Made by a program: the position numbers and the translations under genes
Part shown: positions 2,649 through 52,836 of the stretch, piece after piece
How positions within the stretch are numbered: position 1 is the stretch's first letter
How the letters are laid out: each line of letters begins with the position of its first letter
Sequence record: MT133560.1
Direction: 5' to 3' (one strand)
DNA length: 64,000 nucleotides
Notes under the pieces: generated by a model
What the model saw: the letters and a program-made list of their open reading frames with translations, nothing else
Databases searched by the model: none
What the model was told of the DNA's origin: nothing

Positions 2649-2694
2649 CATTCAAACCATTTTAAAGCGTATATTACAAACTTGATATTAAACC
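2649..2694 (+). promoter_or_regulatory. phage early promoter (TATATTAC at 2670-2677)
   Basis: core motif plus repeated upstream context. Confidence 0.85.
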
Positions 2695-2723
2695 TTTAAT
2701 TAATGTAAAAAGGAATCTATACC

Positions 2724-3239
2724 ATGTTCGAAATTAAATTTGCTAAAAAAGAACAATTTCCTGGCCGTGGTCACTGCATCGAACTTTATGGTGATTATGT
2801 CACCGAGCGTGTATGGCATGCAGTGAAACAAATGGTTGAATGCAACATCACCAATCACGAGTTTTATAAAGCAAAAGAAGGTTTCAGTGTATTCTTCCAG
2901 GGTGGACATGATAACCCTCATGGGAAATGGATCCTTCTGGAATTCTGGGTAGATGATATCGAAAAGACCCGTGAGTTCGTTCGTCTCTTGACCGTCACTA
3001 TTAATCGAGTATTGGTGGAGCGCTTTACTCAAATCTGCATTAACCCTAATCAAATGGGTTATGCAGATGGGGCAGGTGCGTATGTTGCACTTGGTGAAAT
3101 CCATAAAGAAACTGGATGTCGTGTTAATTGGGGTAGTCCGACTACACTTATTACCTTCTATCCTGAAAATAACCTAGAACATCGGAAGGTACTCGACTTG
3201 TGTGAAACCTTCGAACTCCCTGTAACTAGCTGGGAATGA
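2724..3239 (+). CDS. hypothetical early protein
   Basis: 171-aa ORF with AAGGA RBS, downstream of an early promoter. Confidence 0.8.
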   Translation: MFEIKFAKKEQFPGRGHCIELYGDYVTERVWHAVKQMVECNITNHEFYKAKEGFSVFFQGGHDNPHGKWILLEFWVDDIEKTREFVRLLTVTINRVLVERFTQICINPNQMGYADGAGAYVALGEIHKETGCRVNWGSPTTLITFYPENNLEHRKVLDLCETFELPVTSWE

Positions 3240-5057: not shown

Positions 5058-5399
5058 ATGGAAGAGTCCGTAGCAATTAAAGTAGTCGACGACTTGCGCC
5101 GTCCGAATATCGTTGCTCGCATGAATGGTAAACTAGTCTACCATGCTCGTAACGTAGAAATAGTAGAAGGTAAGGATCTATGGCCGAACCGCACTGACGT
5201 AGATGGTGTTCGTGTACTGGTCGGCGAAACCTTCCTTAACGGTGAATGGGTACCCATGCGTAGTTCTAGTCTGGTTAACGTAGATACTGTTACCGGTGTA
5301 TACGAAACCCTCAACTCCGTTTACCTTGCTCCGGATCTTCTGGGAAGTCTCTCGGTTGGTCCCGATGTCTTCAATTCGGATGCTACTCTGAAAGGGTAA
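5058..5399 (+). CDS. hypothetical protein
   Basis: 113-aa ORF with AAGGG RBS; C-terminal RSSSLV...YETLNSVY pattern. Confidence 0.8.
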   Translation: MEESVAIKVVDDLRRPNIVARMNGKLVYHARNVEIVEGKDLWPNRTDVDGVRVLVGETFLNGEWVPMRSSSLVNVDTVTGVYETLNSVYLAPDLLGSLSVGPDVFNSDATLKG

Positions 5400-5404
5400 T
5401 AATC

Positions 5405-5803
5405 ATGAACTTCATTAAAGAAAATGCACTGGGACTCGGTCTCATTGTAGTTGCTGTTACCTCTACCGCAGTAGCAGCTATTCTGGCAGTAAAGGCAACT
5501 TACAAAGAGGAAGGCCCGACCGAAGTACAACAGATCGAAAACAGTATCTCGGACATCCTGATCGATAAGATCACCGAATACCGTAACAGTGAGCAACATC
5601 GCGAGCTGGTGAATCGGCTCAGGCGTGATATCGGATTGGATGTCGCAGAATTCATCTCGCAGATCCAATTGGATATCTCACTCAACGTCATTCCAGAGGT
5701 AGAAGTACTTCTGGAATCTCATCGTGATCAGCTGACCGAGGAAGAGTTCAATCGGCTGGTTGCAAATCTCCAACATTTCGTACAACGGATCATCGCTAAG
5801 TGA
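5405..5803 (+). CDS. putative membrane-anchored helical protein
   Basis: N-terminal TM-like segment GLGLIVVAVTSTAVAAILAV. Confidence 0.8.
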   Translation: MNFIKENALGLGLIVVAVTSTAVAAILAVKATYKEEGPTEVQQIENSISDILIDKITEYRNSEQHRELVNRLRRDIGLDVAEFISQIQLDISLNVIPEVEVLLESHRDQLTEEEFNRLVANLQHFVQRIIAK

Positions 5804-46219: not shown

Positions 46220-46435
46220 TAACTGCATTTTATAAAAATACTGATAGTTATTATTTAATACAGGACTGACGTAAATTAGTTTCTGGATTCAAACTTTATA
46301 CCCATAAACTCAAAAAAGAAGATATGGAAATTGTAAAATGAAAAATAAATAATACTCAGATTGTAATAATATGTAGTGAACATAGTGTTCGTTACGATCT
46401 GCTGATAGCAGATTATAGCGTCTATGTTGTAATGA

Positions 46436-46462: not shown

Positions 46463-46530
46463 TTGAATCTAGTATACTAAGTACTTAGGTTCTTCTTGAT
46501 CAAGAAACCATAATCGTAAAGGTATTTAAA

Positions 46531-48411
46531 ATGGCTGTTAACGAAAACGAAATCGGCACCGTTCAAACTCAAGCTACTGCTCCTGCTCCGCAACCCACTG
46601 CACAGCGTCAAGCTCAACGTCCTACTGGCGCGCCTGGGTCTACTACTGGCATTAACCATCTAATGCGTCGCTCTGGTCGACTAGATGGCTCTGATGCTCG
46701 TTCAGCAGATGCCCTACAAGTATTCACTAAAGTAAAAGAAGAAGCAATCCGCCATCAGGACCTACCTGATGACTTCGATATCCATCGTTTCGATCGTGAT
46801 GCGCAACAAGTTGGTATGGCTGGTCTACTCATTGTTAAACTAGCTAAAGATATCAATGGTTCCATGAAGGCATTCGTTCGTACTCTAGTACTCGATAACC
46901 TACCTGGTACTCGCATCCGTCCCCGTACCCACAAAATCAACAATGGTCTAACCGACGACATCATTGAAGAGAAGGTACTACCGCGTGATGTATTCACTGC
47001 TCAATACTGGAGCAAGATCGGCGAGTTCCTACGGAACCGTTACAACATCCCTGGTCTAGAAGTACTATCTGCCGGTCCCCGTGCAGTGTATGCTGACTTC
47101 GACTTCAAAGATGAACTAGCTGTTAAGAACCTACTAGTTGAATCTGTTAACATCTGTGAAGATGCTATTGCACGTCGTAACAATGAGACTCCGTTCTCTA
47201 TTGCGACCCACATCAAAGCAGAAAACGAACAGCTTACCTGCAACCTAGACTACAATGGTATTCCGGTTAAAGATAGCTGTGGTAATCCGATCCGTTCTGA
47301 CATGGTCATCTCCACTAGCCGTGGTAAGAAAACCAACGTACCTGAGAACGAGTTCTATGATACCGATAGCCAGCTAAACCAAGTTAGTCTATTCGTAGAT
47401 CTACATTGGACTCCGACCACTGGCCAGCAACAAGGTATGTTTGGCGTAACTCTACCTGGTGCAGCTCTACCTCCGCAGTTCACTCCTTACATCGTTATCA
47501 CTGACGTTCGTAAGGCATCCTGGATCCAAGCATGGACTCTAGAAATGTGGCTGTTCGCGCTTGGTAACGCGTATCGTGCAACTGCATCTCAGGCATGGGC
47601 TCGTACTCTAATGCCGAAGATCGCTACTAGTAAGATGCGTGATATTGGTGCACTTGGTTATTACTCAGAGCTAGGTAAAGCGATTGAAACTCGCACCGAA
47701 GCATTCATGGCAGACGACAGCAACTTCGTAATGCTAATGAACAAGATGGTTAACCAGAACCCTGCATTCCAGATCGATATCGATCCAATGGGCGACAACT
47801 CAGCTATTGAGCAAGTCATCCTAGATGCAGCTGGTGGCGTAAACCAAGCTCGTGCAGTTAGCCTGATCTTCCAAGCTCTAACTAACCTATACGGCACTGA
47901 TTTCCGTCAGTTCTATAACCTAGCTGAAGCTGGTCCGATTATCTTTGACAACCATCATGAAGTAGACCTCGGTCACTACACTGATGAGCATGGCGAACTA
48001 AGCGACCGTCGTGATCTTGACGTTCTAGGTGCCATGAACATGTCTGAAGGTAATGACCAAGAGTGGAAGACCTGGTATGCTACTCAGGTAGGTAATGACC
48101 ACATTGTGCGTCGTATGAATAACAGTAAAGGCTTCGACAAGATGTACCTAGGTAACGTTACCTATACTGGTCGTGCTCGTCGTCTAACCTTTAACCCGAA
48201 ATTCATCACCGCAATGGATGCCGCAGCAGCAGCCGCTGGTGTAACTGTAACCATGGAAAACCTAATTACCAACTTCGGTCAACAGCGCTTCGCTGGTTAC
48301 ACCGGTATGGGTAACATGGCTGTTTCTGGTAGTGCACAAGTTGGTATGGCTGGCAGCATGGGTCAAACTTACGGCGCTCCTTCCTATAATGCACCGGGTA
48401 CCTGGTACTAA
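46531..48411 (+). CDS. chmA: chimallin, major phage-nucleus shell protein (gp54-like)
   Basis: 626 aa; sequence recalled as phiKZ chimallin; disordered termini; directly upstream of nvRNAP beta'. Confidence 0.93.
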
Positions 48412-48419
48412 TAGGAAAT

Positions 48420-48735
48420 ACCTCGGTAGATAGGGATGTTAAATAAGTAACATCCCGATTCTAATACTGCGACCCTGGTTCACTTCGGTGATAACGGTTA
48501 GGAGTAGGTTCCGTGAAGTAATCGACTAGTGGACTTAGTCTAGGTCGACCTATCACTACACGAGGATGATAGATCACTTAACCGAAAGGAGTTACTCAAA
48601 AGGTGACGTGTGATCAAAAACTACAATGGATGGTAAATGATACTAGTGCCGGTATGCTACAGAGAAGAGCGGAGGTTAAGCTTTGTAGATGACGCTAGGA
48701 TCGGGCCAGGCTCCGTTGGTGGTCCATTGTAAAAA
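48420..48735 (+). ncRNA. candidate structured non-coding RNA or structured 3' UTR
   Basis: no ORF; contiguous stems including UUCG and GAAA tetraloop hairpins and a long-range tacaatgga/tccattgta helix. Confidence 0.6.
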
Positions 48736-48737
48736 CT

Positions 48738-48780
48738 GATATAGCGGCTCCTTCGGGGGCCGCTTATATCTCCTTTTTTT
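48738..48780 (+). terminator. intrinsic terminator
   Basis: gatatagcggctcc-TTCG-ggggccgcttatatc followed by a T-tract. Confidence 0.9.
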
Positions 48781-48805
48781 GTTAATCGATAAATAGGAGT
48801 TTGGT

Positions 48806-49942
48806 ATGGGTCTTTATGCCAAAGTTGTTGATCATAATGAAGTTCATGATCAATTTACGGGTAAACGAATTTATGCCAATGATTACAATACGAGTAACTC
48901 AGATGAGAAAGAAGAATTTGATAGACATTTCTATTCTCATTTCCAAGATTCAGAAGCAATTGAAAGTAGTGTAAGCTGTGATTGTCGAGCAATCGAAGAC
49001 GCACATAAACTCGGAGTAATCTGTGATATTTGTAATACTCCAGTTGTCAATACTTCTAGCCGCCCTATCGAACCATCAATGTGGGTTCGTACACCAAAAC
49101 ATGTACGTAGCCTAATTAACCCACGTTTAATCATTATGCTAACCGGATATCTAGTAACTAAAGAATTCGATTTCTTAGCATATCTAACTGATACTTCTTA
49201 TCGATACGATGTAGAATCTATTGGTTCTAAGGAAACACGCAGGAAAGTAGATAGGCTACTGCATCGAGGATTTGAAAGAGGATTAAATCACTTCATTGAT
49301 AATTTCAATGAGATCTTCCAATTCCTACTAGATGCAAATATTATCTCTAATAATAAATCCGAATTCGCTCAATTCGTTGCTCAGAATAAAGATAAGTTAT
49401 TCCCTAAATATTTACCAGTTCCTTCTAAACTCTGTTTCGTAGCAGAATCAACCACATCTGGTACTTACTTAGATAAACCAATTGAAGCAGCAATTGATGC
49501 TACCTTAACCTTCGCTAGTATTGATGCATCATCTGTACCACTTAGTCCAATTAAAGCTCAGAATAGGACTATGCGAGGACTAAGACTATATGGCCAGTTC
49601 TACGAGATCTACGCAAAATCACGAATTGCTCAAAAGCCTGGTCTTGCTCGGCGTCACATGTTTGGTGCTCGTCTCAACGCTACGGCACGTGCAGTAATCA
49701 CTTCTATTAGTGACCCGCATGATTATGATGAACTACATATCCCTTGGGGGGTAGGTTGTCAATTATTAAAGTATCATCTAACCAATAAACTAAAAGCAAA
49801 GTTTAACATGACAACTCGTGAAGCATTCTCATTTGTATATGAGAATGTACTTCAATATAACCAAATCATTGCAGATCTATTTAAAGAGCTAATTGCAGAA
49901 GCAGCCCCTTATAAAGGGATGGGTTGTACTTTTCACCGAAAT
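48806..49942 (+). CDS. non-virion RNA polymerase beta' N-terminal subunit, exon 1 (gp55-like)
   Basis: Zn-binding CDC...CDIC; GLARRHMFGARLNATARAVIT resembles beta' GKRVDYSGRSVI; ends at HRN just before the PTL motif. Confidence 0.93.
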
Positions 49943-51186
49943 TAATCTATTAAGTTAAAGCGCTACAGATTCTGGGTGTGGTAACCAGGAATCTCTAATG
50001 AGGAATTATGAATGAAGAAATAAGATGGCGTAAAATACCTGGTTTCAATAATTACGAAGTCAGTGATCATGGTCAAGTTAGGAACCTTAAAGGCGAATTA
50101 ATCTCACAACACGAGAATAAGACAACTAAAGGTACTTACCTTACCGTTAACATCCACAATGATGACGGTATTAGAAAGATTCGTTATGTTCATCGTTTTG
50201 TGTGCATGGCGTTTCATGGGTTACCTGAAAACTTTAATGAGTTGGACGTTAACCACAAAGATACCATTAAGCATAATAATCATTACCTTAACCTAGAGTG
50301 GGAAACTCGTAGCGGTAATGTTAAGCATGCATTTATAACCGGTGCCAATAAACATGCACTCGCTGTTAAATGTACAAACATTCTGACTGGTGAAGTAAAT
50401 AACTTCATCTCGATGAAAGAAGTAGCCGAGTTCCTAGAGCTTGGTCACAATAAAGGGTTACATGTCGTATTGGGTCATTTAGTTAAACCATTCAGAGGTA
50501 AATATGTATTCGAAGTAAGTGGGGATTATCACCCACAGAAGCGTAAGAATGCAATTGAAGTTTATTGCATAGACTTCAAGACCAACACCTTTGGACGATA
50601 TGTAAACCTAACGCAGTTACAACTTAGAACCGGGTTAATTAAAGGGTCAGTGCAGGACATTTTAAAGAAACCAGATCTAAGATTATTCAACGGTGTTGTT
50701 ATCTGTAGGGTCGATGATAAGGAACGGCTATTCGAATACGTTTCTAACCTAACCCAAGAAATGGTTAACAAATCCATTGATGATTACAATAGATACAAAG
50801 CGCGTAGAGAGAAGCTACATACCACCTAAGCAATTAGTGTAGCGACTTAACTTAATATGGGTTTCCTTGTATCAGAAATGATACTCGACAAAACTTCTTG
50901 AATTGCTGGAACAACTCGTTAGGTCAGTTAGCTACAATAGTTCCGAAAGGTTCTATGAATGCTTAAGAATAACTGAATAGAGTCAATCAGCAGCTAAGAT
51001 CCTAACCCGAAAGGTATGGATAAAGTTCAACGACTAGTGCATTGGCACGTAGGGTCCAAGTGGACTCGAAGTGGGAAGCACCTTACTGGGTAAAGCCAAA
51101 GGTGAAGATATAGTCTCAACGTCTAGCGAGAGCTAGAGCTGCACGTAATGGTGCGGGTTAGCCTAACGAACTAACTGAAGATATTG
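49943..51186 (+). other. group I intron 1 (IA-like) with HNH ORF in the P1 loop
   Basis: P aattgctggaa 50901, Q aatcagcagc 50985, R gttcaacgacta 51025, S aagatatagtct 51105; exon ends in U and intron ends in G; IGS gtttc 50861-50865 pairs with exon gaaau. Confidence 0.92.
50008..50829 (+). CDS. intron-encoded HNH homing endonuclease (NUMOD4-HNH-NUMOD1-like)
   Basis: WRKIPGFNNYEVSDHGQVR, VHRFVCMAF, VNHKDTIKHNNHYLNLEW; GAGGA RBS. Confidence 0.92.
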   Translation: MNEEIRWRKIPGFNNYEVSDHGQVRNLKGELISQHENKTTKGTYLTVNIHNDDGIRKIRYVHRFVCMAFHGLPENFNELDVNHKDTIKHNNHYLNLEWETRSGNVKHAFITGANKHALAVKCTNILTGEVNNFISMKEVAEFLELGHNKGLHVVLGHLVKPFRGKYVFEVSGDYHPQKRKNAIEVYCIDFKTNTFGRYVNLTQLQLRTGLIKGSVQDILKKPDLRLFNGVVICRVDDKERLFEYVSNLTQEMVNKSIDDYNRYKARREKLHTT

Positions 51187-51312
51187 CCAACGCTTCAACG
51201 TGGATCTACGCAGCAGTTCTTTATTACTAAAGTAAAAGATGACATTAATGATAATTCTATCAGCATGTCAGTTTTATGCCTTAAGGCTCCAAACGCAGAT
51301 TTCGACGGAGAT
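51187..51312 (+). CDS. nvRNAP beta' subunit exon 2 (catalytic loop; absent from ORF track)
   Basis: manual translation PTLQRGSTQQFFITKVKDDINDNSISMSVLCLKAPNADFDGD; 126 nt, in frame with both flanking exons. Confidence 0.95.
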
Positions 51313-52836
51313 TTTAATTGGTCTCCTAACCTTCTTAATTGCTGGAACCTCCTTAGAGCCTAACTACCAAAGCAGATAGCGAAAGCTAAAATGTAACGGT
51401 TTGAAAAGTGTTAGGATTGGACAATCAGCAGCGAAGCTTCTACGTATTGCCGTGAGGCGAGATAGGAAGAACGTTCAACGACTATCGAAACCACTGCGAA
51501 AGCAGCCAAGGGAGTAGAGTAGGGCCAAGTGGTCCGAAATAGAAGGCTTCCCTCTGGGAAGAAGATATAGTCTCACCATCTAGTGAAAGCTAGAGCAGTT
51601 ACTTAATGTCGGGAGATATTAAGTGGACGGTACAGCAGCGACATGTCTTCCAATGGAGGATATGTGTTTATTTACAGTCGTATACCCAAATCGAGAGAAA
51701 TTGTGATTCCCGGTACATTCGGGCGTTATAGACTGACTCTGGATGGGTTAGTCTATGATCGATTTTTGGATAAATTGATAGATCCAATAAACCGACATTA
51801 CGTTCTTGAATTACCATGGCATAGACTACCCATTCATGTTACTAAGTTGATAGCAGTGTGTTTTAAAGGCTGGCATGCGCCATTAGAGTTTGTTAGCCGC
51901 TGCGAAATATTGTTTTCTGATGGAGATGAAGACAATATTCATCCTAGAAACTTGATTTGGAAATTCCCGGAAGAAGGATTGGAGGTTCCCACCTTCCCAG
52001 GATATTATTTCATCCCTAGTTTTACCTGCTATGCAATCAATGATGAACTCAAGGTCATAAGTCTTTTTGAAGGTTCAGCTAAATTAACAAGTTTGGCGAC
52101 AACTGGATACAGAGATCTTGGATTGCGTCGAGATGATGGCACCTATGTAGGAACGAATTTACACCGTGTAGCTGCACTGACATTTATTGAATACGATAAC
52201 ACCATCAATGAGAAAGTGGTCAACCACATAGATGGTGATCGTGACAATACAGTACCCGATAACCTAGAATGGGTAACCCAGAGTGAAAATGTGTTGCATG
52301 GAAATGCAATCAAAACCGGTTATATTGGATCAGCAAAGAATACCGCGATCATGAGAATGTTGAAAAATCGCGGAATTAACACGGACGGAATTGTTCTTGA
52401 GCACGACGGTATTGAGATAAAGGATATCGTTACGGGTGAAATCAGGAAATATGACTCGCAAAAGAAAGCAAGTGAGGCGATAGGGGTTAGTGTAGGTACG
52501 ATTTCTTTGAAAGTTAGCGGACATGCAATTTATCCAGTCATTATGGATAGGTACATTGTACGTCGGGTTGGTTCAGAATGGCCAACCTGGGATGAATCCA
52601 TTGAGTATAGTCAGGCTAAAAATAAGACCACACTTGTGAAAAATGTGGAAACTGGCGAGATTTTGAAATACAAATCAGCCAAGCAGGCATATCTCGATCT
52701 TGGATTATCAAAGAAAGTAGTAACTAGCAAACTCAAAAAGAAAGACCGTCGACCAATTAATGGGTTCATTTTTAAATATGAAAATGACCCAGATGATTTT
52801 TAGACATGTCGCTGACGATGCTGTATGAAGATAGTG
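51313..52836 (+). other. group I intron 2 (IA-like) with HNH ORF in the P9 region
   Basis: P 51337, Q 51423, R 51473, S 51562; IGS gtctcc 51321-51326 pairs with exon ggagau; terminal G at 52836. Confidence 0.93.
51643..52803 (+). CDS. intron-encoded HNH homing endonuclease (gp56-like)
   Basis: NLHRVAALTF, VVNHIDGDRDNTVPDNLEWVTQSEN; degenerate N-terminal HNH copy; two NUMOD1-like repeats. Confidence 0.92.
   Translation: MSSNGGYVFIYSRIPKSREIVIPGTFGRYRLTLDGLVYDRFLDKLIDPINRHYVLELPWHRLPIHVTKLIAVCFKGWHAPLEFVSRCEILFSDGDEDNIHPRNLIWKFPEEGLEVPTFPGYYFIPSFTCYAINDELKVISLFEGSAKLTSLATTGYRDLGLRRDDGTYVGTNLHRVAALTFIEYDNTINEKVVNHIDGDRDNTVPDNLEWVTQSENVLHGNAIKTGYIGSAKNTAIMRMLKNRGINTDGIVLEHDGIEIKDIVTGEIRKYDSQKKASEAIGVSVGTISLKVSGHAIYPVIMDRYIVRRVGSEWPTWDESIEYSQAKNKTTLVKNVETGEILKYKSAKQAYLDLGLSKKVVTSKLKKKDRRPINGFIFKYENDPDDF

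Follow-up and report, generated by a model that had tools for sequence, protein, structure and literature searches.

A conserved, folded RNA in the 3' untranslated region of the chimallin gene of phiKZ-like phages

What occupies the gap between the gene for the nuclear shell protein chimallin and the polymerase gene that follows it in phiKZ-like phages, and does it do anything beyond separating two genes? We address this question in Pseudomonas phage fnug, a phiKZ-like phage and close relative of phiKZ, using the first 64 kb of its genome (MT133560.1) as the window; all positions refer to this window, and the corresponding phiKZ coordinate is obtained by subtracting 883. The chimallin gene, chmA, encodes a protein 100% identical to PHIKZ054, which is annotated as nuclear shell protein, and is followed by gp55, which encodes the N-terminal subunit of β' of the non-virion RNA polymerase (nvRNAP). 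An earlier note on this DNA, made from the letters alone, had described an element free of open reading frames (ORFs), densely structured and lying between these genes. The position is correct: with the last base of the chmA ORF at 48411 and the first base of gp55 at 48806, the gap between them measures 394 nt (48412-48805). We find that the 3' tail of chmA is a real, conserved, folded plus-strand RNA of about 360 bases that does not code for protein and belongs to no catalogued RNA family. It starts directly after the chmA stop codon and ends in the chmA terminator, in agreement with its earlier placement on the chmA transcript, and the gp55 start codon lies 25 nt past the terminator U-tract.

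The dense folding is borne out by comparison with dinucleotide shuffles. The plus strand reaches a minimum free energy of -122.4 kcal/mol (z = -4.1), a value as good as which was found in none of 100 shuffles, and the minus strand of the gap folds less well (z = -2.6). Because of its G-U pairs and this asymmetry of folding between the strands, the RNA is assigned to the plus strand. For the comparative analysis, ten distinct copies of the element, six from Phikzvirus and four from Pawinskivirus, were aligned (alignment A2), and RNAalifold resolved them into a consensus of 16 helices and 108 pairs, in which 99.5% of 1079 cells are paired. Eight pairs carry compensatory changes, compared with 0-1 when the partner is slid by one to three columns, and the observed covariation score was matched by none of 500 shuffles. 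Three of the compensatory pairs are independent events in single lineages, located in helix 7 of W10-2, in the junction of HPP-Temi and in helix 12 of phiKZ. Conservation and covariation among relatives, which the earlier note had proposed as a check, are thus both present, and its candidate for a novel structured plus-strand RNA is upheld.

Seven of the eight stems that had been read from the fnug sequence recur in the consensus fold. The stems gggatgtta/taacatccc, tcgac..gtcga, tacaatgga/tccattgta and ctacagag/ctttgtag, the UUCG-capped hairpin, and the gatcac..gtgatc arm with its cc-GAAA-gg tetraloop show either covariation or full conservation, and the terminator hairpin is likewise supported. 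The eighth, ctatca/tgatag, does not hold: its 5' arm pairs instead with 48513-48518 to form helix 6, which has one compensatory change, its loop contains one strand of the long-range helix 1, and in the alignment, read by eye, it is broken in HPP-Temi and W10-2. The positions of the helices and of the surrounding features are collected in Table 1.

Table 1. Coordinates of the RNA element, its parts and the neighbouring features in the 64-kb fnug window
Feature	Position	Strand	Description or basis
chmA (chimallin, phiKZ gp54 orthologue)	46531-48411	+	626 aa; ORF list
Whole structured element (chmA 3' untranslated region and chmA-gp55 intercistronic RNA, terminator included)	48412-48782	+	free-energy z-score, helices, compensatory pairs, identity island with PA1C
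Domain 1	48422-48564	+	closed by long-range helix CUCG (48422-48425)/CGAG (48561-48564)
Domain 1, helix 2	48427-48430 with 48460-48463	+	RNAalifold
Domain 1, H1	48433-48441 with 48448-48456	+	RNAalifold
Domain 1, helix 4	48465-48474 with 48496-48506	+	RNAalifold
Domain 1, UUCG hairpin	48480-48483 with 48488-48491	+	RNAalifold
Domain 1, helix 6	48513-48518 with 48550-48556	+	RNAalifold
Domain 1, helix 7 hairpin	48522-48534 with 48538-48548	+	RNAalifold
Domain 2, three-way junction	48572-48615	+	44 nt; covariance models, pair covariation
Domain 3, multibranch	48622-48731	+	closed by ACAAUGGA/UCCAUUGU
Domain 3, helix 12	48639-48648 with 48693-48702	+	RNAalifold
Domain 3, helix 13	48657-48664 with 48681-48688	+	RNAalifold
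Domain 3, helix 14	48668-48670 with 48675-48677	+	RNAalifold
Domain 3, helix 15	48705-48709 with 48716-48720	+	RNAalifold
Intrinsic-terminator-like hairpin	48738-48780	+	stem 48738-48751 with 48756-48770, UUCG loop, 3-nt spacer, U7 at 48774-48780
Short ORF	48637-48732	+	unconserved
Short ORF	48461-48577	-	unconserved
gp55 exon 1 (nvRNAP β' N-terminal subunit)	48806-49945	+	ORF list; tblastn with the intron-less PA1C orthologue

The most widely conserved part of the element is domain 2, a three-way junction that consists of the closing stem GAUCAC/GUGAUC, a joiner UUAA, a mini-hairpin CC-GAAA-GG, a joiner A, a second hairpin GUUACU..GGUGAC and a joiner GU. It is present in a single copy in the window (78.6 bits in fnug), and no paralogue of either the junction or the whole element was detected in these 64 kb. 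A covariance model built from the Phikzvirus and Pawinskivirus copies (R2) matches the chmA 3' untranslated region (3'UTR) of phiPA3 (E-value 9e-5) and Phabio (E-value 0.02-0.07). When a further model (R3) was seeded with four genera and without 201phi2-1, the 201phi2-1 junction, which had first been spotted by eye, was recovered from its chmA 3'UTR as the best new match in 76 kb of relatives' DNA (E-value 0.022). In the model-fitted alignment, 7 of the 14 junction pairs show compensatory changes, compared with 0-1 in slid controls, and a hand alignment agrees; variation is all but absent from the joiners (UUAA, A, and GU or UU) and from the inner closing-stem pairs. On this basis we propose a new RNA family defined by a closing stem RAYCRC/GUGRUY, a 5' joiner UUAA (UUUA in Phabio), two hairpins and a 3' joiner GU or UU, with the chmA stop codon on its 5' side and the chmA terminator on its 3' side. 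These features occur together in fnug and in four further genera, so that the family spans Phikzvirus, Pawinskivirus, Miltoncavirus, Phabiovirus and Serwervirus, among which the ChmA proteins are only 42-65% identical. The covariance models detected no junction in Psa21, D6, Noxifer, Viktualia and six sampled chimalliviruses outside the clade.

The order chmA to RNA polymerase gene is kept across the family, and what lies between them varies. By blastn, every genome of the phiKZ group has the element, with 96-100% identity, and the identity is about 85% in the Pawinskivirus group (PA1C, PS119XW, HPP-Temi and others); in phiHQ only the 3' half is present, and phiPA3 gives a patchy match (alignment A1). 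The gap measures only 85-118 nt and holds a hairpin terminator alone in D6, Noxifer, DT01, Ea35-70, Eowyn, Goslar and RP12, whereas LucasX has about 250 nt with a terminator annotated just past chmA, and the gaps of 201phi2-1, Phabio, Viktualia and Psa21 are long and differently filled. The chmA 3'UTRs of 201phi2-1, Phabio, Psa21 and phiHQ are themselves much more stably folded than shuffled sequence (z = -6.3, -5.4, -3.3 and -6.0, respectively). In 201phi2-1 and Phabio an ORF intervenes between the chmA terminator and the polymerase gene; the element is therefore tied to the 3' end of chmA and not to the 5' end of the polymerase gene, and it is best described as a chmA 3'UTR and intercistronic element that travels with the chmA 3' end. 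The 3'UTRs of these two phages (locus sequence 5259-5483 in 201phi2-1, 5253-5536 in Phabio) also open with a GAAA-capped GGGAU...UCCC hairpin where fnug has H1. A string CUAA(A)UACUG shared by fnug and 201phi2-1 was not counted, since one phage has it in a helix and the other in a loop, and by rough estimate so short a match could be due to chance.

Searches for the junction at larger distances returned nothing further. A 17-20-base junction pattern found only phiPA3 and PA7 themselves in IMG/VR, and 64 metagenome hits and 30 bacterial-genome hits to the pattern are attributed to chance: nhmmer with the full element recovers none of them, and one is simply a ribosome-binding site followed by ATG. 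No Pseudomonas genome matched the pattern, and for that reason we see no sign of a host origin.

The flanking domains are conserved over a shorter range. Compensatory changes affect helices 1, 2, 3, 6 and 7 of domain 1 and helices 11 and 12 of domain 3, the latter including an independent change from U-A to G-C in phiKZ. As read by eye from sequence, alignment and fold, phiPA3 keeps the skeleton of domain 1 with different sequences in helices 4, 5 and 6, and bears a branched insertion of about 190 nt in place of the helix 7 hairpin. A model of domains 2 and 3 together aligned only the junction in phiPA3, where domain 3 is either too diverged or non-homologous. Within domain 3, the sequence allows a possible loop-loop pairing between CGGAG (48670-48674) and CUCCG (48711-48715); both loops are invariant, and covariation is accordingly silent on it.

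Could the gap instead harbor a small protein gene or a signal that acts as DNA? Just two short ORFs overlap it, one on each strand, so that the earlier description of it as ORF-free is essentially sound. For the plus-strand ORF, the ATG is confined to fnug and phiKZ, and PS119XW has a frameshift; frameshifts or stops affect the short ORFs in PA7 and in the Pawinskivirus copies, and PA7 and every Pawinskivirus copy have a broken minus-strand ORF. A small protein gene was rejected, since both ORFs lose start or frame among relatives. A gp55 promoter or a replication or packaging site might be sought in the A-rich strings followed by TACT-like or CTGATA-like motifs at 48463-48468 and 48732-48745, which loosely resemble both a described middle-promoter feature (PMC8244752) and a string at 46235-46248. 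The G-U pairs and strand asymmetry, however, point to a plus-strand RNA, repeats typical of origins were not found in the gap, and a scan for sigma-70-type promoters, a class irrelevant to the phiKZ polymerases, stayed at chance level. We regard a DNA-level signal or a protein gene as extremely unlikely. The gap had also been called GC-richer, which is true relative to gp55 (about 34-38% G+C) and untrue relative to chmA (45-50%), the gap itself having 43-46%.

Comparison with catalogued RNAs, which the earlier note had recommended, gave no match at gathering score in 48300-48900. With the element as query, no family in Rfam 15 matched at E≤10, the best scores being 12-18 bits against thresholds of 42-55, and the homologous UTRs of phiPA3, phiHQ, Psa21, 201phi2-1, Phabio and Viktualia matched nothing at E≤5. 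ARAGORN found no transfer RNA or transfer-messenger RNA gene over 48000-49000. A group I intron or its remnant was considered and rejected: RF00028 is unmatched at E≤10, while genuine introns elsewhere in the window reach 75-88 bits, and the element, standing after the chmA stop codon, interrupts no gene. In D6, Noxifer and other phages that lack it, chmA is full-length with the same C-terminal end and the polymerase gene is separate. The earlier note had been unsure whether the RNA was already described; the literature searched has no description of it in its main texts. The transcriptome papers on phiKZ and 201phi2-1 and the gradient profiling by sequencing (Grad-seq) and antisense oligonucleotide papers do not describe it in their main texts, and their supplementary tables of transcription start and termination sites may list a boundary, or a '5'UTR-derived' candidate upstream of PHIKZ055.

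The element's history can be approached by comparison of the two genera that share it in full. In 60-nt windows, fnug and PA1C are 80-98% identical over the element, with sharp edges, against 32-65% over the end of chmA and 53-65% over gp55. The flanking proteins of PA1C are close to those of phiPA3 (ChmA 65%, RNA polymerase 84%) and far from those of fnug (49% and 66%). Within the element, PA1C is phiPA3-like in H1 and at 48549-48571 (79% versus 62-67%), 97% fnug-like at 48457-48521, and 86-89% fnug-like in helix 7, the junction and domain 3. Variants also cross between the genera: SL2, PA7, T2P and W10-2 (Phikzvirus) bear the Pawinskivirus variant of helix 12, and HPP-Temi bears the Phikzvirus variant of one junction loop. 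phiHQ and PA1C have identical ChmA proteins, yet phiHQ carries, in place of domain 1, a module that is related to the 3'UTR of Psa21. Psa21 content is missing from its close relative D6, and 201phi2-1 content from Viktualia. These comparisons suggest, most simply, that the chmA 3'UTR is a recombination hotspot at which RNA modules are exchanged between phages sharing Pseudomonas aeruginosa as host. Very strong purifying selection on its own would leave the incongruence with the flanks unaccounted for. Co-conversion by nearby homing endonucleases was considered as the cause of the identity island and rejected as unlikely: the stretch separating the island from the introns, gp55 exon 1, is only 53-65% identical to PA1C.

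The module that replaces domain 1 in phiHQ is structured, spans about 300 nt (phiHQ locus sequence 2694-3000) and is 73% identical to part of the Psa21 chmA 3'UTR (5256-5690). An 89-aa reverse-strand ORF in Psa21, MZD04_gp057, is unconserved in phiHQ, and the shared region may therefore be a second family of RNA modules instead of a gene. It carries a motif CUUAA-NN-GAAA-NN reminiscent of the junction.

Such mobility invites the explanation that the element is a decaying mobile insertion without function, whether intron remnant, selfish DNA or recombination scar, and that its copies are similar only through recent transfer. The gap is indeed a hotspot with different inserts in different phages, two group I introns encoding HNH endonucleases lie nearby downstream in gp55, and both the island of identity and the mosaicism indicate recent exchange. 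Substitutions are nevertheless overwhelmingly pair-preserving, as seen from the proportion of paired cells and the three single-lineage compensatory events, and the junction has been retained, with covariation, in genera with widely diverged ChmA proteins; moreover, a group I intron signal is absent and no gene is interrupted. An insertion devoid of function is thus very unlikely.

Where, then, does the transcript end? The strong terminator that the note had pointed out is visible as a G+C-rich hairpin followed by U7; a simple terminator scan missed it because of the 3 nt between the extended stem and the U-run. Its stem and U7 run show no variation among the relatives. The hairpin is near-identical across all P. 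aeruginosa chimalliviruses, 83-87% identical between three lineages, and weakly recognizable after chmA in 201phi2-1, Viktualia and D6. In phiKZ, chmA is co-transcribed with the downstream nvRNAP cistron PHIKZ055, and an antisense block of chmA translation leaves nvRNAP synthesis and chmA mRNA unchanged, so that effects are cistron-specific (PMC12571901). Differential RNA sequencing put two promoters, one early and one middle, upstream of PHIKZ054 and assigned this gene to a six-gene operon (PMC8244752), and a long-read study assigned PHIKZ054 to many transcription units (PMC10914365). Since the two genes are published as co-transcribed despite the conserved hairpin and U7, the terminator appears leaky: it apparently marks the 3' end of chmA-only transcripts, with termination probably partial, and the element apparently serves also as the spacer of the chmA-nvRNAP operon. 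The A-rich linker before the hairpin (AAAAACTGATATAG, 48732-48745) is similar to a string (AAAAATACTGATAG, 46235-46248) that lies upstream of the chmA region.

A structured RNA, a terminator and then a ribosome-binding site and ATG 25 nt further on is, in fnug, the order seen in attenuation leaders, and the terminator is apparently read through. The element might accordingly be a regulatory leader and control how often transcription passes the terminator into gp55 and the later genes of the nvRNAP operon; it could take the form of a riboswitch-like device, a protein-dependent attenuator or a processive antitermination signal. GGCUCC at 48709-48714 repeats part of the terminator 5' arm and could compete for the 3' arm, and the junction AAAGGAG is complementary to CUCCUUU of the terminator tail. 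However, these candidate alternative pairings are not conserved in phiPA3, Phabio and 201phi2-1; in the latter two a further ORF separates the polymerase gene from the junction and terminator, which come after chmA; and riboswitch, T-box and other leader families are unmatched at E≤10. A leader function appears quite unlikely. The Shine-Dalgarno-like AAAGGAG (48585-48594) and its complement (48767-48776) form an inverted repeat (I5) conserved in Phikzvirus and Pawinskivirus only, and a long-range or alternative pairing that touches the U-tract is possible from the sequence.

The reading that we favor, at a probability of roughly 0.45, is that of a cis-acting 3'-end module that partitions and stabilizes chmA transcripts and carries a probable protein-docking junction. 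The terminator would split transcription into many chmA-only mRNAs and fewer read-through mRNAs, an unequal division that would suit a shell protein of which the phage presumably needs far more than of a polymerase subunit. Ahead of the terminator, the compact fold would shield the 3' end of chmA mRNA from decay, and the invariant junction would most likely be where a protein docks or a tertiary contact forms. Grad-seq of phiKZ at 10 min reported only two candidates for non-coding RNA (ncRNA), neither of them in the gap (PMC8545117), a silence that fits a tail that stays on the mRNA early in infection.

Several observations weigh against this cis-acting module. Five of the eight compensatory pairs split the two genera as blocks, which leaves few independent events in the full element. 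D6, Noxifer and the chimalliviruses of hosts other than Pseudomonas have a plain hairpin terminator only at this place; because relatives manage with a bare terminator, partitioning and 3'-end protection fail to explain a multi-domain fold of 330 nt with invariant unpaired nucleotides, and the extra 330 nt probably do something more. In addition, complementarity of the element to the chmA 5'UTR or leader, or to the gp55 ribosome-binding site, does not rise above that of shuffles.

Alternatively, the tail could be a trans-acting ncRNA, either cut from chmA mRNA or ending at the shared terminator, stable, and titrating a host or phage factor such as an RNA chaperone, a nuclease, a ribosomal component or a defence protein; expression through the chmA transcript would be early and high. 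Its architecture, with a terminator and U-tail shared with an mRNA, is that of small RNAs derived from 3'UTRs, and phiKZ already has a 3'UTR-derived ncRNA at PHIKZ298 (PMC8545117, PMC10914365). The element also behaves as an accessory module, missing in close relatives, swapped in phiHQ and mosaic between genera, and its unpaired stretches that never vary, together with the junction joiners, hint at a specific ligand. On the other hand, the main texts of the Grad-seq (PMC8545117) and long-read (PMC10914365) surveys list no ncRNA here, about 360 nt is far above the typical size of a 3'UTR-derived small RNA, no target or partner can be deduced, and GGA motifs seem, by a rough count, not to be enriched. 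We hold a trans-acting RNA to be the leading alternative and a serious one, though less likely than not. A bolder and rather unlikely proposal is that the chmA 3'UTR carries swappable RNA 'cargo' modules, an RNA counterpart of moron genes, expressed early and in bulk through the chimallin transcript. The junction would then be the handle for a partner, and the action would reach beyond the module's own mRNA, as a decoy for host RNA-binding, nuclease or defence proteins or as a zipcode that holds chmA mRNA at the nascent shell.

How does the element compare with known systems? Like the 3'UTR-derived ncRNAs of bacteria and phages, including 3'UTR_PHIKZ298 of phiKZ (Gerovac et al. 2021, PMC8545117; Putzeys et al. 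2024, PMC10914365), it is structured, lies between a stop codon and its own intrinsic terminator, belongs to a strongly expressed phage transcript and is conserved in related phages. RNAs of that type measure about 100 nt with two stem-loops, in contrast to the three domains and 16 helices of the roughly 360 nt found here, which moreover include a junction conserved across five genera. A second parallel is with intercistronic stabilizers. The repetitive extragenic palindromic (REP) elements in malEFG and the hairpins of the puf operon stabilize transcripts between cistrons and, together with partial terminators, bring about unequal expression within an operon. The chmA element resembles them as a structured spacer between a gene presumably needed in bulk and one of low need, in a published co-transcript, but these are simple hairpins, and its complexity and invariant unpaired nucleotides go beyond the needs of 3'-end protection.

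GOLLD and ROOL, both in Rfam, are likewise phage-borne, multi-domain and supported by covariation; the chmA element differs in being smaller, unmatched in Rfam, fixed in the 3'UTR of one mRNA and confined to one clade of Pseudomonas chimalliviruses. With group I introns (RF00028) it shares its size, GNRA and UUCG tetraloops, a multi-branch fold and an intron-rich locus, and it differs by the absence of a match to that family and of an interrupted gene. In fnug it also resembles attenuation leaders, riboswitches and the put RNA of HK022, in which RNA and terminator stand just upstream of a ribosome-binding site and start and are read through; unlike these, it is associated with the upstream gene in two genera, has no conserved antiterminator that we could find and matches no family. 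A structured 3'UTR or intercistronic RNA that ends in a terminator is therefore a known arrangement, and phiKZ has a smaller RNA derived from a 3'UTR. What is new is how large and complex this RNA is, that several genera share its junction, and that its modules are exchanged between phage genera, all on chmA, the most studied gene of the model jumbo phage.

Since phiKZ is the main model of nucleus-forming jumbo phages and chmA its best-known gene, it is of some consequence that an attached RNA of 360 nt appears unannotated in the literature searched. A junction conserved within an otherwise freely swapped 3'UTR offers a handle on the stability, position and dosing of chimallin mRNA relative to the polymerase genes, as well as on the possible use of large ncRNAs by jumbo phages against their hosts and on the movement of RNA modules between co-infecting phages. 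The finding also has a practical side: engineered edits of the phage, or antisense oligomers, aimed at the seemingly empty gap would hit a conserved RNA.

The neighboring genes have features of their own. Two group I introns, 1.1-2 kb downstream of the gap, part the exons of gp55; their Rfam cores lie at 50843-51138 and 51291-51595, with scores of 87.5 and 74.8 bits. The gene is split in three exons (48806-c.49945, 51187-51312 and c.52837-53028), all covered by alignment of the intron-less PA1C protein, and each intron contains an HNH/NUMOD homing-endonuclease ORF (50008-50829 and 51643-52803). The spliced product of about 480 aa is consistent with the 56 kDa of purified gp55 (PMC4666361). For the predicted introns of phiKZ, the long-read study saw no evidence of splicing (PMC10914365), and Gp55 appears on blots as two bands (PMC10612078). 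On the other side, the chmA 5' leader has a perfect 14-nt palindrome (TTCTTGATCAAGAA, 46493-46506) just upstream of the ribosome-binding site; farther upstream, where differential RNA sequencing puts the early and middle promoters, there are TATATTAC-type and TACT strings.

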